Shown here piece after piece: positions 8,224-52,310 of a stretch of 64,000 nucleotides of DNA. A program made the translations under genes and the position numbers. Position 1 is the stretch's first letter; each line of letters opens with the position of its first letter. Under the pieces are notes generated by a model. That model ran no database searches, had not been told where the DNA came from, and was given only the letters and a program-made list of their open reading frames with translations. The stretch comes from Rebecca billardiae RCC1528 (Eukaryota > Protista > Haptophyta), in assembly GCA_965240325.2 (NCBI GenBank), contig OZ251231.1, forward strand, positions 682,001-746,000, written 5' to 3'.

Positions 8224-9777
8224 TCATGCTCGGAAGTCCCACAGCGGGACTTCTTCGAGCTTACAGGATCGCCAGTGAAGACCTCCCGCGCCCCTCGAGA
8301 TCATACGGAGTTGGCGGCGAGATCGCGCTCTTGCGGCGGGCGGCGGGCGGGAGCGCGCGCCGGCGCTCGCTCGCGCGCTCGCTGCCCGCAGCGCGCGCGT
8401 CAGGTCGTCGTGAGCGCTTGCGCGCCGGCGCTAGGGCGCGTGCCACCTGCGCACGCCGCTGGTTCGCGCCTGCGCGCTCTGCTCCGCCGCTGCGGCGCTT
8501 GCGAGCGCTCGCCGTGTCTTGCGCCGGCTCCCGGCCCGCCGCGTCGAAAGCCTGGTTGTGCGGCCAGCCAAGTGTGGCGTTTGCGGCTTGGCGCGCGAGC
8601 GCGCGACGCAGCGGATGGCGCGTGTGAGCCGTCCAGCCAGTGTCACTCGCCTCGTGCGCCGCGCGCCGACCGCGCGCCCCAGATTCGACGACGAGCGCTG
8701 CTCGGTCACGGTGAGACGGGAGTCGGCGCTCCGCATCGCAGAGCCGCGTGTGGTCGCGCAGAAGAGGCCGCGCGTGGCCGGCGCGGCCGCTTTGTGCCGT
8801 GGTCTAGGCTTCAATCGCGTCCGCAGTCGGTGAGAACGCATGCCTCGCCCACGAGGTCACTCATCTTCTGCCCGTACACAGCGCGTGACACGTGAGGTGG
8901 ATTCCAGAAGGTGTCTCGAGGTCACGCCGTCACCGATCGTAGCCACATAAGCCATTGCGTGGAAGAGCTGCGCTCACGGAGATCGTGCACGTGTCATCAG
9001 CGCGCTACCAGACCATAACCATCGAGTTCTTGAAGCCGTATACCAATGGAGTAGGATGGCTGGATGGGTTTGTTCGAGCCCACGGCTGGCGGCACGAGTG
9101 ATACGGCCCGGCACGCAGAGTCAGGTCAAGTCGCCCACTCGTGAGTGCGGCGTGACCGCTTGGGCAAGGCAAGCAACTGCGGACGCGATTGAAGCCTAGA
9201 CCACGGCACAAAGCGGCCGCGCCGGCCACGCGCGGCCTCTTCTGCGCGACCACACGCGGCTCTGCGATGCGGAGCGCCGACTCCCGTCTCACCGTGACCG
9301 AGCAGCGCTCGTCGTCGAATCTGGGGCGCGCGGTCGGCGCGCGGCGCACGAGGCGAGTGACGCTGGCTGGACGGCTCACACGCGCCATCCGCTGCGTCGC
9401 GCGCTCGCGCGCCAAGCCGCAAACGCCACACTTGGCTGGCCGCACAACCAGGCTTTCGACGCGGCGGGCCGGAACCGGCGCAAGACACGGCGAGCGCTCG
9501 CAAGCGCCGCAGCGGCGGAGCAGAGCGCGCAGGCGCGAACCAGCGGCGTGCGCAGGTGGCACGCGCCCTAGCGCCGGTGCGCAAGCGCTCACGACGACCT
9601 GACGCGCGCGCTGCGGGCAGCGAGCGCGCGAGCGAGCGCCGGCGCGCGCTCCCGCCCGCCGCCGCCGCAAGAGCGCGATCTCGCCGCCAACTCCGTATGA
9701 TCTCGAGGGGCGCGGGAGGTTTTCACTGGCGATCCTGTAAGCTCGGAGAAGTCCCGCTGTGGGACTTCCGAGCATGA
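8224..9777. mobile_element. Non-autonomous foldback DNA transposon, ~600-bp TIRs, 4-bp TSD AATC
   Basis: Arms 8224-8827 and 9176-9777 are reverse complements with few differences; ends TCATGCTCGG...CCGAGCATGA; AATC at 8220-8223 and 9778-9781. Confidence 0.85.
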
Positions 9778-22148: not shown

Positions 22149-23099
22149 GCCAAGCCTAGCTTACAGAAATTCAATCATAATGCCTGGCGCCAATAAATAG
22201 AAACGCGAAAATGTTGGACCTTTCCCAGATCGAGATCCGCCTCTTGATACAGTAGCTGACAATCGGCGTATTGACTCAAAGCCTCAATGCGGCAGTGAGT
22301 CAATGCGGCGGGTGTCAAGATCGATCAGTATTCAAATTTTCTCTATTGAAATTACAACCAAATAAGCCCTGATGAATCGAACATAGCTTATTCTCTCTGC
22401 TAATGAGATTCAATGTGAAGGCGATTGCCCGCGATTACCCGCGCGACTCAAGTGTAAGTAAGCCTGAACTCAGCAGCTCGCCGATCAGCATAGGAATGAA
22501 ACGTGAATATAAAGGTCGCCTCTCCATACAGTAGTCAAGAGACGCACACAGCTCCGAAGGCAGGCGAGATAACAATCTCGGCCGTGTGCCCGATTCGGGC
22601 GCGGCGGAGGCGGACTCGGAGACTGACATACCCCTTGCCCTCCTTGCGCCGCGCAACGCCGCCCACGCGCATCGCCGCTCGCACGCGCAGGCACTGCCAG
22701 TGCCATATTCCTTGCCCTCCTCGCGCCGCGCAGCGCTGCCCACGCGCATCGCCACTCGCACGAGTGCAGGCCCTCCTTGACCTTCCGCGCGCGTGCGGCC
22801 GAGGCCGCCGAGGGCTCCGCCACCGGGCCGGCCAGATGCGGCTGATGCCGGGGCCTCGCCGAGACTTGACTGAAGCGTGATGGGTGGTGCCATGCGCCTG
22901 CCAGTGGTGCTAATCTGCCCTACTGTACTGACCGTCAGGGCACTCTAAAAGTAACTACATCAGACTTTTTTACTAACGAATAGAATAAAGTTAATAAAGA
23001 GACGCGCGCACACAGCTCTCCGCTCAGGTGTGCAGCAGGCAAGGGAGGTCCGGGCCGGTCGGGAGCTCCCAGCGAGCGGCCAGCGCGACGTCACTGCAA

Positions 23100-24109
23100 A
23101 GTTTTCCCTGAGCGCCGGGCGGCGGCAGCGGCGAGGGCGAGTACTCCGCTGGCGGGGCGCGCACGGGGCACAGCGCTGCGGGCGCGGATGTGCCCGCAGA
23201 GCCGGCGCGCGCGGACGGGCTGTTGCGGGAGAGTACTCGGCGCCCTCCTGCGCCGCGCGTCTTGCGCCACGCCTCTTTCGCCTCGGCTCAGGGCAGCGCG
23301 CACATTCGCGCCGCGTCAACGGGCCAGCCTTGCCTGCGCCGCAGCCGACCGCGCGCGCGCCGTGCGCGGCGTGGTCGGGAAGGAACGGGCGCTGCCGCGG
23401 GGCGAGGTGGCGACACCATGCGCGCACGCCATGCCGCCCCGCCACGCCTTGACGAGCGTGTCGTCGGTCCGTTTGCATGCCTCTTTGACTTGTCACAAAT
23501 GGTGTGCACGGCCGTGCGGTCGTGTCACTCGTGACCCTTGTCGGGACGATCATTGAGACGCAGAACAGTGCCAGACGGGCGCGCGGGCTACTCTTACATG
23601 GATATTCATCACCGTGTGGTCAAGTAGAGGTGCTGGATGCGACGCTTTCCTCGCGCTGATGCTCTTTCATCATCTTCTTCGAGCTCAGGTCCGTGGCCGT
23701 TGGCACGACAAGTGATCAGCACTCGTCAACAGCTGTGCAGATCTATTTCCGTGCCCTTTCGCGGCATCACGGGGCGGCATGGCGTGCGCGCATGGTGTCG
23801 CCACCTCGCCCCGCGGCAGCGCCCGTTCCTTCCCGACCACGCCGCGCACGGCGCGCGCGCGGTCGGCTGCGGCGCAGGCAAGGCTGGCCTTGACGCGGCG
23901 CGAATGTGCGCGCTGCCCTGAGCCGAGGCGAAAGAGGCGTGGCGCAAGACGCGCGGCGCAGGAGGGCGCCGAGTACTCTCCCGCAACAGCCCGTCCGCGC
24001 GCGCCGGCTCTGCGGGCACATCCGCGCCCGCAGCGCTGTGCCCCGTGCGCGCCCCGCCAGCGGAGTACTCGCCCTCGCCGCTGCCGCCGCCCGGCGCTCA
24101 GGGAAAACT
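23100..24109. mobile_element. Foldback element, ~340-bp TIRs, possible CAA target duplication
   Basis: Arms 23100-23441 and 23770-24109 are near-perfect reverse complements (AGTTTTCCCTGAGC...GCTCAGGGAAAACT); CAA lies on both flanks. Confidence 0.75.
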
Positions 24110-45222: not shown

Positions 45223-45369
45223 AGCCTCCAGCCCTACCCTGGCCAGCCCCCAACCAACCACCACCCTCACGGTCATACCAAGGAGACTTAAAAAATTGGG
45301 TTATTTGTAAGACCCCTTGGTCATACGGCCTCATGAAGATAGTAGCAATCAACATAGTAGTAGGCGGTG

Positions 45370-47250
45370 ATGAACAGGCACGGCGAGAACCCCATCGAGT
45401 GTGATCACGCCGGCTGCACCAAGGTGCCCCACTTCGGCATGACGGGCGACGCGCACGCCAGCCTGTGCGCTGCGCACAAGCTGGCCGGCATGGTCGACGT
45501 GAAGCACCCCAAGTGTGATCACGTGGGCTGCACCACGGTGCCTTCGTTCGGCATGCCGGGCGACGCGCGCGCCAGCCGGTGCGCTGAGCACAAGCTGGCG
45601 GGCATGGTCAACGCGAAGCACCCTGGATGTGATCACGTCGGCTGCAACAAGCAGCCTTCGTTCGGCATGCCGGGCGACGCGCGCGGCAGCCGGTGCGCTG
45701 CGCACAAGCTGGCCAGCATGGTCGACATGAAGCACCCCAAGTGTGATCACGCCGGCTCCACCAAGGTGCCTTCGTTCGGAATGCCGGGCGACGCGCGCGC
45801 CAGCCGGTGCGCTGCGCACAAGCTGGCCGGCATGGTCGACGTGAAGCACCCCAAGTGTGATCACGTGGGCTGCACCACGGTGCCTTCGTTCGGCATGCCG
45901 GGCGACGCGTGCGCCAGCCGGTGCGCTGAGCACAAGCTGGCCGGCATGGTCGACGTGAAGAACCCCAAGTGTTATCACGTCGGCTGCACCAAGCGGCCTT
46001 CGTTCGGCATGCCGGGCGACGCGCGCGCCAGCCGGTGCGCTGAGCACAAGCTGGCCGGCATGGTCGACGTGGTGAGCCGCAAGTGTGATCACGTCGGCTG
46101 CACCAAGATGCCTCACTTCGGCATGCCGGGCGACGCGCGCGCCAGCCGGTGCGCTGAGCACAAGCTGGCCGACATGGTCGACGTGAAGAACCCCAAGTGT
46201 GATCACGTCGGCTGCACCAAGCGGCCTTCGTTCGGCATGCCGGGCGACGCGCGCGCCAGCCGGTGCGCTGAGCACAAGCTGGCCGGCATGGTCGACGTGA
46301 AGCACCCCACGTGTGATCACGTAGGCTGCACCAAGGTGCCTTCGTTCGGCATGCCAGGCGACGCGCGCGCCAGCCGGTGCGCTGAGCACAAGCTGGCCGG
46401 CATGGTCGACGTGCAGCACCCCAAGTGTGATCACGCCAGCTGCACCAAGCGGCCTTCGTTCGGCATGCCGGGCGATGCGCGCGCCAGCCGGTGCGCTGCG
46501 CACAAGCTGGCCGGCATGGTCGACGTGAAGAGCCGCAAGTGTGATCACATCGGCTGCACCAAGATGCCTCACTTCGGCATGCCAGGCGACGCGCGCGCCA
46601 GCCGGTGCGCTGAGCACAAGCTGGCCGGCATGGTCGACGTGAAGCACCCCACGTGTGATCACGCCGGCTGCACCACGGTGCCTTCGTTCGGCATGCCGGG
46701 CGACGCGCGCGTCAGCCGGTGTGCTGCGCACAAGCTTGCCGGCATGGTTAACAGCCAGCTCGCCGTCCACAAGCGCAGGCTGGAGCATGGCACCGGCGAC
46801 CAGGGCACGCGTGCTGCGAAGCGACAGCACACGCACGCGAGCCGCATTGCCGCTTTATCGGACGCTGCGCCGCAGCTTTCCTCACCGCCGCCGCTGGTCG
46901 AAGTCAGCATCGTCCGCTGGCGCTCGCCAGATGGCAAGATCCATTCGGTTGACGACGGGGTGGTCGATGATGGTGCCTGGGCCCTGGACGAGCGGCATCA
47001 GCGTGGCAATGCCGATGATGCCGCCATCTGGGCTGCCCCTGGCATGAGTGGCAGCTACGACCAGGGACTACCAGCAGGCATCAACACTACCGCTGCGCCA
47101 GCACTACCATCATCCTCGATTACGATGGCGGCGGTCCGAGCACGACTCCAGCAGCCACGGCCACAGGTCGTACCCGTGGACGTGGTGATGGCGAGGAGGG
47201 CCCGGGTCGATGCTGGTGACTGCAGCGGCACAGCAGCGCGTATATACTAG
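45370..47250 (+). CDS. EsV-1-7-type cysteine-rich repeat protein with 12 repeats of 38 aa
   Basis: Repeat CDHxGCTKxPSFGMPGDARASRCAEHKLAGMVDVKxPK (114-bp unit) from ~45400 to ~46750. Confidence 0.85.
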   Translation: MNRHGENPIECDHAGCTKVPHFGMTGDAHASLCAAHKLAGMVDVKHPKCDHVGCTTVPSFGMPGDARASRCAEHKLAGMVNAKHPGCDHVGCNKQPSFGMPGDARGSRCAAHKLASMVDMKHPKCDHAGSTKVPSFGMPGDARASRCAAHKLAGMVDVKHPKCDHVGCTTVPSFGMPGDACASRCAEHKLAGMVDVKNPKCYHVGCTKRPSFGMPGDARASRCAEHKLAGMVDVVSRKCDHVGCTKMPHFGMPGDARASRCAEHKLADMVDVKNPKCDHVGCTKRPSFGMPGDARASRCAEHKLAGMVDVKHPTCDHVGCTKVPSFGMPGDARASRCAEHKLAGMVDVQHPKCDHASCTKRPSFGMPGDARASRCAAHKLAGMVDVKSRKCDHIGCTKMPHFGMPGDARASRCAEHKLAGMVDVKHPTCDHAGCTTVPSFGMPGDARVSRCAAHKLAGMVNSQLAVHKRRLEHGTGDQGTRAAKRQHTHASRIAALSDAAPQLSSPPPLVEVSIVRWRSPDGKIHSVDDGVVDDGAWALDERHQRGNADDAAIWAAPGMSGSYDQGLPAGINTTAAPALPSSSITMAAVRARLQQPRPQVVPVDVVMARRARVDAGDCSGTAARIY

Positions 47251-49091
47251 CTAGCTACTTTTAACACTATTATCTAGGCGAAGAGTACTCTCTAAGACCG
47301 AGGCTACAAGTTTGTCTGACTACTGTTAGCTCACCGGACGCAGATAATCAATCAAATCGGCATAATATCGGCGTCACGGCGCGGAGGGCGCCGGAGAGAG
47401 CTGCGGAGCCGTCCGCGACGGCCCCGGGCCCGCGGTCCACGGACTAGCAGGCAGAGTGGCGGCAACACTGACCAATCGTAGAAATACCATACGGGTCAAC
47501 TGCACAGATCATCGAGGGGGTCGCGACGGCTCGTAAGCGGACGAGCATGAGCACCAGCTGGGGGTCGCCGCGACGGCGCACGATGCCTTTGCTGAATTCA
47601 CCCGGTCGCGGGACACCGTTCGTCTGCGCACGCGCCAGGACGCGCTTCTCGCCGTCTTCGCCTTGTTTCATGAGTGCCGCGCACACGACTGAACGCCAGC
47701 GTTTCAAGCCTTAAGAGGCCAGACGCGTGCGCAGACTCAGAGGAAGGGCAGACTCCGAGGGCAAGCGCGCAACGTGGGTAAGTCGCAGAGCAACCGTCCA
47801 AGCTGTTTTACATGTTTTCTTCGTGCGCGCGTCTCTGAGCTCGATTCTCATGCCTCAGCCAGTGCTAGGGTCCATTGGACAGGCCGCCAGCCCGCCAAGC
47901 GCAACGCGGAGACGGGCGCGCCGCGCAGAAAGCGTGCTGCGGGCGCCGGGGCCGCTCGGCCGCACGCCTATGTAGTATTAATCATCAAGGCGGCTGTATT
48001 TCGTCATGCAACTTTAATTGAACTTATTCTGGAAACCCACGAGAACAAAGGCACGACTTCACGCTGGGGACCAGCCCGTCGCGGGCCTTTATTTGACGCC
48101 CACTCACGTGTCGGTCACATAAGCGCAATTCGCGTACCCGCTTACGCGCGCGATAGGGCAAAAGCCGCTCGTCGTTCAGTCAAAAACCGCTCGTCGTTCG
48201 GCGCTTTGCGTGCTCACATTCGCGCGAATCGCATCGGCCCATTATTCGTCGTGTCGCGAGTTCACACATTTCACGAGCGAAAGGGCGCGTTGATAGAGGC
48301 ACGCGGGTATCATCTTGCATTGGACTACGAGCATCGGAGCAACCTCGCGCGGCCTCGCGTCGACGACGTCCCGTGAAGGACGCCACGACGACAGGCGGGT
48401 GAGCCCACTGCGGCGCCAAGCGAGCGACGCGGGGCGCGCGGCGGGCGCACGCGCGAGGCTGCCCACCACGCGCACGCGCGCGAACCCGCCGGCTCGGGCG
48501 ACACGCGCCGCCTCAGCTCGAGCACGAGCGCGAGGCGTGGCGCCGGCTCGCCGTGGCGGCGGAGGGCTCGACCTGCATTGCGCGCGACGAGCGGCTCGCC
48601 TGCGGTGCCAGCGGATGAAGCGGCAAGCCCGGCGGGCGCATACGCGCAGGTCCGCCCTCCACGCGCGAGCGCGCGACTGCGTGTTCCACGAGCTGCAGCA
48701 GGCGGCCGCGGGCTGGTCGGCGGCCGGCGAGGTCGGCGGAGTGCCGCCCGGCCCGCGTTCTCGCTTGGGCGCGGGCCACACTCTCACTCACAGCGCGGGG
48801 CGTGGTGCTGCAGACGGGCCGGTCATTGCAGCGCGCACTCCGTGGTCAGACGTGCACACGCGCGCGCGTCGTCAGCCCCGCCGCTGCGCCCCTGTGGCGC
48901 CCTTGGCAGCGTCGGAATTCCGAGCTCGAAGCCACCGGCCGCGAGCTGCCATCGTGCGTTTCAGAAACAGGTTTCCAGCCCAAGTTGACGCGCAGCGCCA
49001 ACCCATATTGGATTCTCCGATTCTCCGCCCCCAGCTGCAGCTGGGCAAGGCCGAGCCGAGCGAGCGGGAGGGGTTGCTCAGCCCTGCAACC

Positions 49092-51794
49092 TCAGCCGAG
49101 AGAGGTGGCATTGCCACCTCTCGCGCGAGTTGGGGAAACGTTGAGTTCCCGAGTTTTTACACGGGGCGGCAATTTCTGGCGCGCGCAATCTTCCGATTTT
49201 AAGGCGGTGGGTGGCGCCGCCGCCGTCGCGCTCTCGACGCGCGCGAGCTGCGCGCGCGCGGCGGCGGTTTTGGCCGCGCGGCACTGGGCCGGCTGGGTCC
49301 GCGCGGCCGAGGAGGCCACTCTTGCCGCGGTGGTCGTGGCGCGGGGACGTCCCCGCCGCTCGCCAACCTCCCGCGAGCGCCTCGCGCCGCCTCGCGCCGC
49401 CTTCACGCCATCTCCGCGCGCCAACTGCACGCTCTGGACGCCTCGGCGGCAGAGCCGCGCGCGGCGCGGTTGTGTGCCGTGTAGACTGGGCCCATGCGCG
49501 TCCGCTGTCGGTGCGCCCCGGCCACGCACGCGCGCAGCCCAGACCTCTCGCCTCACGCGTCGCCGCCGAGCGCGGCTGTGCACCTCAGTCTGCCGTGGTG
49601 CCGCGCGCGCGGCCGAGCGAGCAGGCGGCGCGTTGTGGAGCGTGTGACGCACGAGACGGGAAGGCGTCCGAGCGTCCGAGCCACCGCCGACCGGCGGCGC
49701 GCACGCGATTGGCTTGAGCCATCGGCGCCGACGGCGCGCGCGCGCTGAGCCAGCTGAAGGCTTGTGCGCCATGGCACGGCAGCCGCCAATCGCGGCCTGC
49801 GGCCGTACTGTGCGGCAGGCGCGCTCGGTGCGGGCGCTTCGGGGCGTGGCCTCACGAGACCGGAGCCCCTGGAAGCGCGACGCCTATGAGCTCGCCCCGG
49901 CCTGAGTGAGCGCGCATCTGTCAGTGATCGGCACACGCAGCAGCACGGGGTGGCCGTCGTCATGAGCCATGGCCTTGACACGGCCGCGCTGAGCGCGCCA
50001 CGACACACCGCACGGCGCCGCGTGAAGAGTAGATGTATGACCCCCGGCACTTACCTTGGCCCGTGTGCTCTTGCGCGCACGCACGCGAGCACTCGCATGC
50101 TGCCGCGCACCTGCCTCAACGCGTTTCATCTGAGCGTCTGTCCGATGCCAGCCACGTGCTTCCATTGACAGAGAGAGTGACTATACCAGTCAGAAGTCGT
50201 AATCCTCCAGTTGAACCGCACAGTTCCATGGTTGCAGTGCTGCTGGTCCGCTGACTCCGAGGTGGGCGCGCCACGGCAGCTCTCTCTCTCACGGCGCACG
50301 GTCCTTGTGCGCCGGGAGCAGCCGCGTCTGCGCAGACCGACTGCTTACCAGGAAGTTTGAGACTGTATCTCCTTCCATCCCAGCTGCTGCAACGTCTACC
50401 ACGGCTGGTAGCCTGCTGACCCAGACGACCAGCGAGCAAGTATGTCTCCTCGGTGAGCGCGAGCGAGCGCTGCTGCTGACACTCGATTCGTGCGCACACG
50501 CGCCCGCCCGACGCACTCTCACGTTGGCCCGAGGTGGCGTGTGCGCGCGCCCACGCGCGATGATGCCAACTGCTGCTCAGGTCATCCGACTACATGGGCT
50601 GAATAGTGGGTCGTGCTACCTGGCCGCGCGGCGCTCGAAGCTCGCGTTTCTGGCTGACACGAGCGCTTCAAGGTGTCAGCGTAGGTGAAGGGTGGGATAC
50701 TGGGATCCCAGCCTTCTGCCGGTACGGAGACAGCGCACACGCACGCGTGGCGCCTGCGCCGCCGGCCATCGCACACAGCCCTGCTGAATGGTCTCGCATG
50801 CGCCAGCATGACCGTGCACGCCTAGCGCCGCACCATGCAGGTGAGAACTTCAAAAGTGCGCATGCTCGCTTGTTCTTTGTGCCTGGTCGACACCCAGCGT
50901 GGGAGCGCTCAGCGCGGAGCTCATGACGACGGCCACCCCGTGCTGCTGCGTGTGCCGATCACTGACAGATGCGCGCTCACTCAGGCCGGGGCGAGCTCAT
51001 AGGCGTCGCGCTTCCAGGGGCTCCGGTCTCGTGAGGCCACGCCCCGAAGCGCCCGCACCGAGCGCGCCTGCCGCACAGTACGGCCGCAGGCCGCGATTGG
51101 CGGCTGCCGTGCCATGGCGCACAAGCCTTCAGCTGGCTCAGCGCGCGCGCGCCGTCGGCGCCGATGGCTCAAGCCAATCGCGTGCGCGCCGCCGGTCGGC
51201 GGTGGCTCGGACGCTCGGACGCCTTCCCGTCTCGTGCGTCACACGCTCCACAACGCGCCGCCTGCTCGCTCGGCCGCGCGCGCGGCACCACGGCAGACTG
51301 AGGTGCACAGCCGTGCTCGGCGGCGACGCGTGAGGCGAGAGGTCTGGGCTGCGCGCGTGCGTGGCCGGGGCGCACCGACAGCGGACGCGCATGGGCCCAG
51401 TCTACACGGCACACAACCGCGCCGCGAGCGGCTCTGCCGCCGAGGCGTCCAGAGCGTGCAGTTGGCGCGCGGAGATGGCGTGAAGGCGGCGCGAGGCGGC
51501 GCGAGGCGCTCGCGGGAGGTTGGCGAGCGGCGGGGACGTCCCCGCGCCACGACCACCGCGGCAAGAGTGGCCTCCTCGGCCGTGCGGACCCAGCCGGCCC
51601 AGTGCCGCGCGGCCAAAACCGCCGCCGCGCGCGCGCAGCTCGCGCGCGTCGAGAGCGCGACGGCGGCGGCGCCACCCACCGCCTTAAAATCGGAAGATTG
51701 CGCGCGCCAGAAATTGCCGCCCCGTGTAAAAACTCGGGAACTCAACGTTTCCCCAACTCGCGCGAGAGGTGGCAATGCCACCTCTCTCGGCTGA
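49092..51794. mobile_element. Non-autonomous foldback DNA transposon, ~876-bp TIRs, 4-bp TSD AACC
   Basis: Arms 49092-49967 and 50919-51794 are near-identical reverse complements; ends TCAGCCGAG...CTCGGCTGA; AACC at 49088-49091 and 51795-51798. Confidence 0.9.
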
Positions 51795-52310
51795 AACCGC
51801 CTCTGACCTTGGGCAGCAGCCATACATGCAGGCCAGCATGAGCGGCGGGGTGGCATCAGAGCCGGCCCCGGCCCGCAAACGCAAACAGCCGGACGCCCCG
51901 GCCCACACAGCTGATGCGCCAGCAAACCCTGCTCCGGGCCACAGAACCCTGCCGCCGGCTTTGAGGCCGACACGCCACACTGGGGCACATATCACCTGAG
52001 GGCCGGGCCTTCTGTGTGATAAGCTACCCCAGTCATGCCGCTTGATACACACCTTCCCCAACTGACAGTGGGGCTCTACATTCCCTACTACATCCTCATC
52101 CTGTCGGCGCGCTGTCGCATCGGCGCCCAGTCGGCGAGTTCGGACGACGACGTTTTGTGGACGACGGTGGGGCGAGGACGACGGGCGCTGGCGCGCCGCG
52201 AGGCGGCCGCAGCCCTCATCCAGGCCTCGCAGGCGGACGGCTGAACGAATTTTTCCGGCGGCGCTACCATCGGCGACGGCTTCATGGGCGGTGACAGTTG
52301 GCGGGCGTCA

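Follow-up and report, generated by a model that had tools for sequence, protein, structure and literature searches.

Non-autonomous foldback elements with palindromic tips and a purine-N-N-pyrimidine target rule in the haptophyte Rebecca billardiae

Foldback is a shape of transposable element, not a family. The FB and Galileo elements of Drosophila, which belong to other superfamilies and make target-site duplications of 7-9 bp, resemble the element described here in their very long near-identical inverted arms, their short non-coding middle and the predominance of non-autonomous copies. Among the described groups with duplications of 4 bp, AWWT or AWDT has been described as a hallmark of Sola1 (PMC3845634), and Sola2 elements also have AWWT duplications (PMC3627910). 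PiggyBac likewise makes 4-bp duplications, and in the insect element a palindromic 19-bp repeat, located at bp 17-33 of the double-stranded end, is the site to which the cysteine-rich domain binds as a dimer (PMC7351741). We have analyzed a stretch of 64,000 nucleotides (the window) from Rebecca billardiae RCC1528 (assembly GCA_965240325.2, contig OZ251231.1, positions 682,001 to 746,000 of the forward strand) and specifically a 2,703-bp element located at 49092-51794, hereafter element 2. It is probably a copy of a non-autonomous cut-and-paste foldback family, mobilised in trans by a transposase whose cuts in the target are staggered by 4 bp.

Element 2 is made of two inverted arms of 876 nt (left, plus strand, 49092-49967; right, minus strand, 50919-51794) and a spacer of 951 bp (49968-50918). 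The arms are mismatched at 3 positions (arm nt 212, 368 and 481; 99.7% identity), the tips read TCAGCC...GGCTGA, and AACC is found on either side (49088-49091 and 51795-51798). At both ends nt 9-31 are a perfect palindrome with an 11-bp stem and a 1-nt loop (49100-49122 on the left), and two outer pairs lengthen the tip hairpin to nt 6-34 (49097-49125 and 51761-51789). As single-stranded DNA this tip folds with -13.4 kcal/mol, compared to -5.1 +/- 2.0 for shuffled sequences (z -4.2). A preliminary description of the locus had already reported the near-identical arms with TCA...TGA ends, a perfect 11-bp palindrome starting within 10 bp of each end and a ~950-bp spacer devoid of a recognisable transposase, all of which we confirm.

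When the 72-Mb assembly (41 contigs, ~70% GC) was searched, we found 8 full copies of element 2 with 98-100% identity (subfamily A), 7 copies of ~3.07 kb with arms 89-91% identical to those of A (subfamily B) and a few solo arms. The arm and the spacer used as queries each retrieved the same set of loci. These copies, at least 15, are distributed over eleven contigs with identical boundaries, and perfect 4-bp duplications, different from copy to copy, lie directly beside the TCA...TGA tips in all 13 copies with both flanks readable. Actually, the copies C17 and C3b sit in paralogous copies of another repeat and each aligns gaplessly to the reconstructed empty site of the other, confirming that exactly four bases are duplicated. 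The pairwise differences among A copies were between 8 and 51 over ~2,700 positions (0.3-1.9%), and this low divergence indicates recent activity. Element 2 is a family of mobile elements and not an assembly artefact.

The family encodes nothing and is non-autonomous. No Pfam match was obtained for the open reading frames of the spacer and the arms; rich in arginine and alanine, these are read-throughs of the kind usual in GC-rich DNA. No RNA family from Rfam was found in the element. The arm substitutions between A and B were distributed by codon position as 13/10/9, with no bias (p = 0.67). Besides, Pfam detected no transposase among the 20 large open reading frames of the window that were tested for one.

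The duplications of element 2 were AAGT (three times), AACT, AACC, AAGC (twice, counting GCTT), AAAT/ATTT, ATTC, AGGT, ATGT and ACGT. After the 13 sites were symmetrised into 26 half-sites, position 1 was A in 22 and G in the remaining 4, with an expected frequency of A of ~0.15 (p = 6e-15), and there was a weaker preference for C immediately outside the duplication. The target rule is purine-N-N-pyrimidine, mostly A-N-N-T, with AAGT as the commonest sequence; the AAYC rule suggested previously turned out to be a coincidence of two copies. In the same way, we analyzed element 1 of the same window (8224-9777), another foldback of 1.55 kb with ~600-bp arms, for which we found 14 paired copies in the genome, 4 of them at ~100% identity. 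Five bases beside each tip, read by two pattern searches, gave a perfect 4-bp duplication in 14/14 copies: AAGT five times (counting ACTT), AAGC and AATT twice each, and AAAT, AATC, GAAT, AGTC and GATC once each. Position 1 was A in 21 of the 28 half-sites and a purine in all of them. Pooling both elements, position 1 was a purine and position 4 a pyrimidine in 54/54 half-sites, and AAGT was the top sequence in both.

The tips of the two elements are also built alike, with four or five unpaired bases beginning with TCA and then a hairpin of ~30 nt that starts at nt 5-6. The folding energies are close to that of the A tip (-13.2 kcal/mol for B and -12.8 for element 1, the latter with a z of -6.5), and over the three tips z went from -3.7 to -6.5. 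Both elements are foldbacks with signs of recent activity, whereas in size, arm length and sequence they differ: comparing the two, we found no similarity past the TCA, in agreement with the earlier observation that no primary-sequence relationship was evident. Since duplication length, target rule and tip layout are the same, our analysis supports the proposal, made in the preliminary description, that elements 1 and 2 are two families of one transposition system. There is a third foldback family in this genome, starting with CAAGGGAGG, and a copy lying inside the one of element 2 in C18 (L019:401-1500) has a 7-bp duplication (GCCGTGC), indicating that here the foldback shape is not bound to one transposase type. 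The copy of this family present in the window (23040-24109) has no right tip.

Over the first 40 nt, A and B have in common nt 1-4, 6-9 and 11-16 plus the distal half of the stem. Three double changes between the two maintain the pairing (10-30, A-T to T-A; 17-23, G-C to C-G; 19-21, A-T to C-G), so the hairpin is conserved and has the compensatory changes that had been proposed as a check, showing selection for two-fold symmetry. The solo variants have 3-7-nt insertions in the loop and still fold. Further inside, at nt 73-93, a block of 21 nt (GGGCGGCAATTTCTGGCGCGC; 49164-49184 on the plus strand and 51702-51722 on the minus strand) does not vary among A, B and the solo variants, within a tip that is otherwise 56-70% conserved, and it is a candidate inner binding site. 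In the whole genome this block is restricted to the A and B copies and the solo variants, and a metagenome scan with the invariant 21-mer gave only one chance bacterial match. A high-copy word, GCAGTCGAGGGAGGTG, considered as a possible relative of the tip, has no hairpin partner and is unrelated.

The mechanism that we propose for element 2 is as follows. A transposase acting in trans would make cuts staggered by 4 bp at purine-N-N-pyrimidine targets, most often AAGT, and would join the TCA...TGA tips to the cut ends. The ~30-bp palindrome situated 5-6 nt from each tip is a probable recognition site at which the transposase would bind, and it may act either as an extruded hairpin or, in double-stranded form, by binding a protein dimer. 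A second binding site might be the invariant block some 73 nt from the tip. The long arms would be passengers, kept identical by copying from one arm to the other, and a fast divergence of the first ~150 nt is what could be expected if the tips track their transposase.

Several observations weigh against this interpretation. Searches of the assembly by tip, by hairpin and by the 21-nt block revealed no autonomous partner, with the DNA inward of the solo ends remaining uncovered. Specifically, the terminal 16-mer (one mismatch allowed) and the hairpin pattern retrieved, genome-wide, the copies listed above and three solo ends only (C26:534290, C29:1135616 and C8:2061391), two of which, C26 and C29, share a hairpin variant with a 4-nt loop. 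The co-variation of the palindrome does not separate recognition of a hairpin from binding of a dimer, since the same co-variation is expected from hairpin extrusion and from a double-stranded palindrome bound by a protein dimer. The two other points refer to Sola, the superfamily closest in duplication pattern: published Sola1 and Sola2 tips begin with G (GGACC..., GAAT..., GAGC...) and element 2 with TCAG, and the duplication pattern is the one feature on which membership would be based. As possible ends of an autonomous copy, the solo arms were discarded, one adjoining unique DNA and the other a sulfotransferase-like open reading frame (assigned by eye; no Pfam match).

By duplication pattern Sola fits best among the superfamilies, and the tips of element 2 fit no described family. 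All the duplications of both elements have the 4 bp typical of Sola, with the outer A and T in 22/26 half-sites of element 2 and 21/28 of element 1; the inner positions are looser than W, tolerating G and C, and 14/27 duplications match AWDT. Cut-and-paste movement and terminal inverted repeats are also shared with the non-autonomous Sola1 and Sola2 elements, which differ from element 2 in their G(G/A) tips and, in the published examples considered here, in having repeats of 12-36 bp instead of 876-bp arms. The Repbase rule for Sola tips is that positions 1-11 are alignable with one mismatch (PMC4455052), and the tip of element 2 (TCAGCCGAGAG) did not align in this way to the published GGACCGTTTAT, GAATATTTATT and GAGCATTTATT. 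Sola transposases had no detectable similarity to Pfam as of 2017 (PMC5751038). In our estimate the chances that the partner is Sola-like are about one in three. Other superfamilies were rejected: Chapaev, of the CMC group, has invariable CAC...GTG tips (PMC4079192) and element 2 TCAG...CTGA; Ginger2 makes TATA-type 4-bp duplications (PMC3845634), and TATA was found in 0/27; and Helitron2-type elements have no regular duplication and short asymmetric inverted repeats, against the constant 4-bp duplication and symmetric 876-bp arms of element 2.

A different explanation is that an undescribed transposase lineage reads the shape of the tip, a TCA followed by a hairpin at a fixed offset, and that a single enzyme moves families unrelated in sequence. 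Element 1, A and B have only the TCA, the hairpin offset and the target rule in common, the central stem changes between A and B with pairing retained, and the genome searches found no autonomous copy matching either tip sequence, all of which would be consistent with it. However, A and B retain islands of sequence (nt 1-15, nt 24-36 and the 21-nt block) that point to recognition of sequence, each family could have its own partner, lost or located in unread sequence, and no protein was identified for such a lineage. We find it unlikely that the TCA-hairpin tip is read largely by shape, by an undescribed or highly divergent eukaryotic lineage that mobilises element 1, A and B. If it were true, old bodies could acquire new tips by grafting, and this would explain that the tips diverge far faster than the arms.

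In another alternative, elements 1 and 2 would be a piggyBac lineage that lacks TTAA specificity, moved by one of the piggyBac transposases of this genome with a dimer of its C-terminal domain on the tip palindrome. The 4-bp duplication is the same, and the layout of the insect piggyBac palindrome (PMC7351741) is much like that of element 2, at a distance from the tip of a few to ~15 bp in both cases. Besides, piggyBac genes that look intact (PF13843, 73-74 bits) are present at three loci, the only ones found by searching the genome with this domain. Two of them, 99.7% identical, belong to the two copies of one 4.5-kb element and must have been active recently, and the third is inside an element whose inverted arms are 1,736 bp long. 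For the two-copy element, the left end could be read as TATC|TCAC, but in one copy it is TTAT|CTCAC and no single duplication is consistent across both copies. Of the piggyBac loci, 0/3 have tips like those of elements 1 or 2 (none lies near matches to the terminal 16- or 17-mer), and the single-copy element, TTAT|CCCGTAG...CTACGGG|TTAT, has canonical piggyBac-like tips and a TTAA-like flank. The flanks of these piggyBac elements start with T, instead of the purine found throughout elements 1 and 2, and their ends fold weakly (z -1.6 and -1.9). TTAA appears in 0/27 duplications, and the tips of elements 1 and 2 are TCA...TGA, not CCC...GGG. A search of the solved structures by sequence with the piggyBac protein gave no match. 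A piggyBac origin of element 2 is thus not supported and seems to us very unlikely, while cross-mobilisation by a piggyBac transposase may occur. Finally, long perfect inverted repeats are a known mode of assembly error. A chimera of the assembly, foreseen in the preliminary description as what could undo the finding, is ruled out, as is a local inverted duplication, by at least 15 copies on eleven contigs that have the same boundaries, differing duplications and mutual paralogous empty sites.

The piggyBac elements have some peculiarities of their own. In the single-copy one (L068:3189-8707; C1:2179888-2185406) the near-perfect 1,736-bp arms overlap the 3' part of the transposase gene, and as a consequence the C-terminal coding part is doubled (second match with 96% identity, residues 161-514). 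The other (L067:3126-9285) adjoins a 1.6-kb element whose ends are TTATCCCAC, and the 8-nt repeat GCCGTAGG flanks the two together. Its second copy (L069) has neither the TTATCCCAC element nor the GCCGTAGG repeat.

Returning to the non-autonomous foldback family, the comparison of A and B reveals how its arms evolve. Of the differences between the subfamilies, 106 were carried by the two arms alike and 7 by a single arm, and four sites that mark sub-lineages within A were again mirrored between arms. This indicates that the arms have been repeatedly homogenised, or that one has been re-copied from the other, and consequently their 99.7% identity is uninformative about the age of the insertion. 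The young insertion deduced from arm identity in the preliminary description does not stand on that basis; the recent activity does, being now supported by the divergence between copies. Such a strong co-evolution in a foldback element is a warning against dating insertions by the identity of their arms. The identity between A and B was 56-70% over the first ~150 nt and 90-98% for nt 151-800. Again in this case, element 1 has a sister subfamily (G000 loci C11:2851842, C25:1243651, C5:1367138 and C11:2511264) that is 76-78% identical over nt 46-1509, with the first 45 nt unalignable, i.e., a conserved body with changed tips as in A and B. A body that is conserved while its tips change fast fits co-evolution with the transposase as well as tip replacement.

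The larger copies with paired tips were considered as candidate autonomous elements and every one was a nest. Two B copies contain 1.6 kb and 2.1 kb of foreign DNA, one A copy contains a 1.1-kb foldback, and insertions also account for the 4.9-kb and 10.4-kb copies of element 1. In the two B-tip loci (L020:2370-3825 in C11 and L023:2360-3825 in C1), the 1.6-kb element with TTATCCCAC ends landed at nt 16 of a B tip and the 2.1-kb element at ~nt 26-29 of another. An 8.9-kb insertion is located at ~nt 21 of an element 1 tip (G000:C5:791029-801474). The ~30-nt tip palindromes may be insertion hot spots for other mobile elements. One B copy is inserted in an array of the 14-nt palindrome TCAGCCCGGGCTGA, upstream of a sodium-symporter-like gene. 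The palindrome beside this copy was rejected as an excision footprint, since it is a repeat unit with 110 occurrences in the genome (1 for a control) that forms terminal arrays of a ~2.3-kb family. The occurrences are grouped in clusters of 2-4 with a spacing of 26-37 bp (L017:1370-1500 and genome-wide), and many clusters are paired ~2.25 kb apart, resembling the terminal arrays of another element family.

The non-coding spacer of element 2 is a mosaic of other repeats. Its nt 281-392 (50248-50359) have ~72% identity to another dispersed or tandem repeat, and nt 773-939 (50740-50906) ~75% identity to the same one, in which the counterparts of both segments sit 9 bp apart. Between them, nt 404-731 (50371-50698) derive from a separate family of ~930-bp non-coding repeats (L053-L058, e.g., L053:1078-2000) with short TCTCTT...AAGAGA ends and apparent TA duplications. 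This family, part of which is thus embedded in the spacer, carries GAAGGGTGGG/CCCACCCTTC hairpins. The neighbours of element 2 are a gene with EsV-1-7 cysteine-rich repeats on one side and, on the other, a gene whose product matches the polysaccharide pyruvyl transferase family. An open reading frame of 627 residues (45367-47250, plus strand) consists of at least 12 cysteine-rich EsV-1-7 motifs (PF19114, E = 5e-160); the repeat takes its name from a virus of brown algae, in which it was first described.

In summary, this poorly studied and very GC-rich alga harbours two foldback families with no sequence similarity that have one insertion rule and one tip architecture. Together they make it possible to ask, in a clean natural test, if a eukaryotic transposase of the cut-and-paste kind reads the shape or the sequence of DNA, and the A and B subfamilies provide natural compensatory mutants of the tip hairpin. 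If the partner is Sola-like, these elements would be active substrates of Sola that are defined unusually well; otherwise, the system may mark a new lineage.

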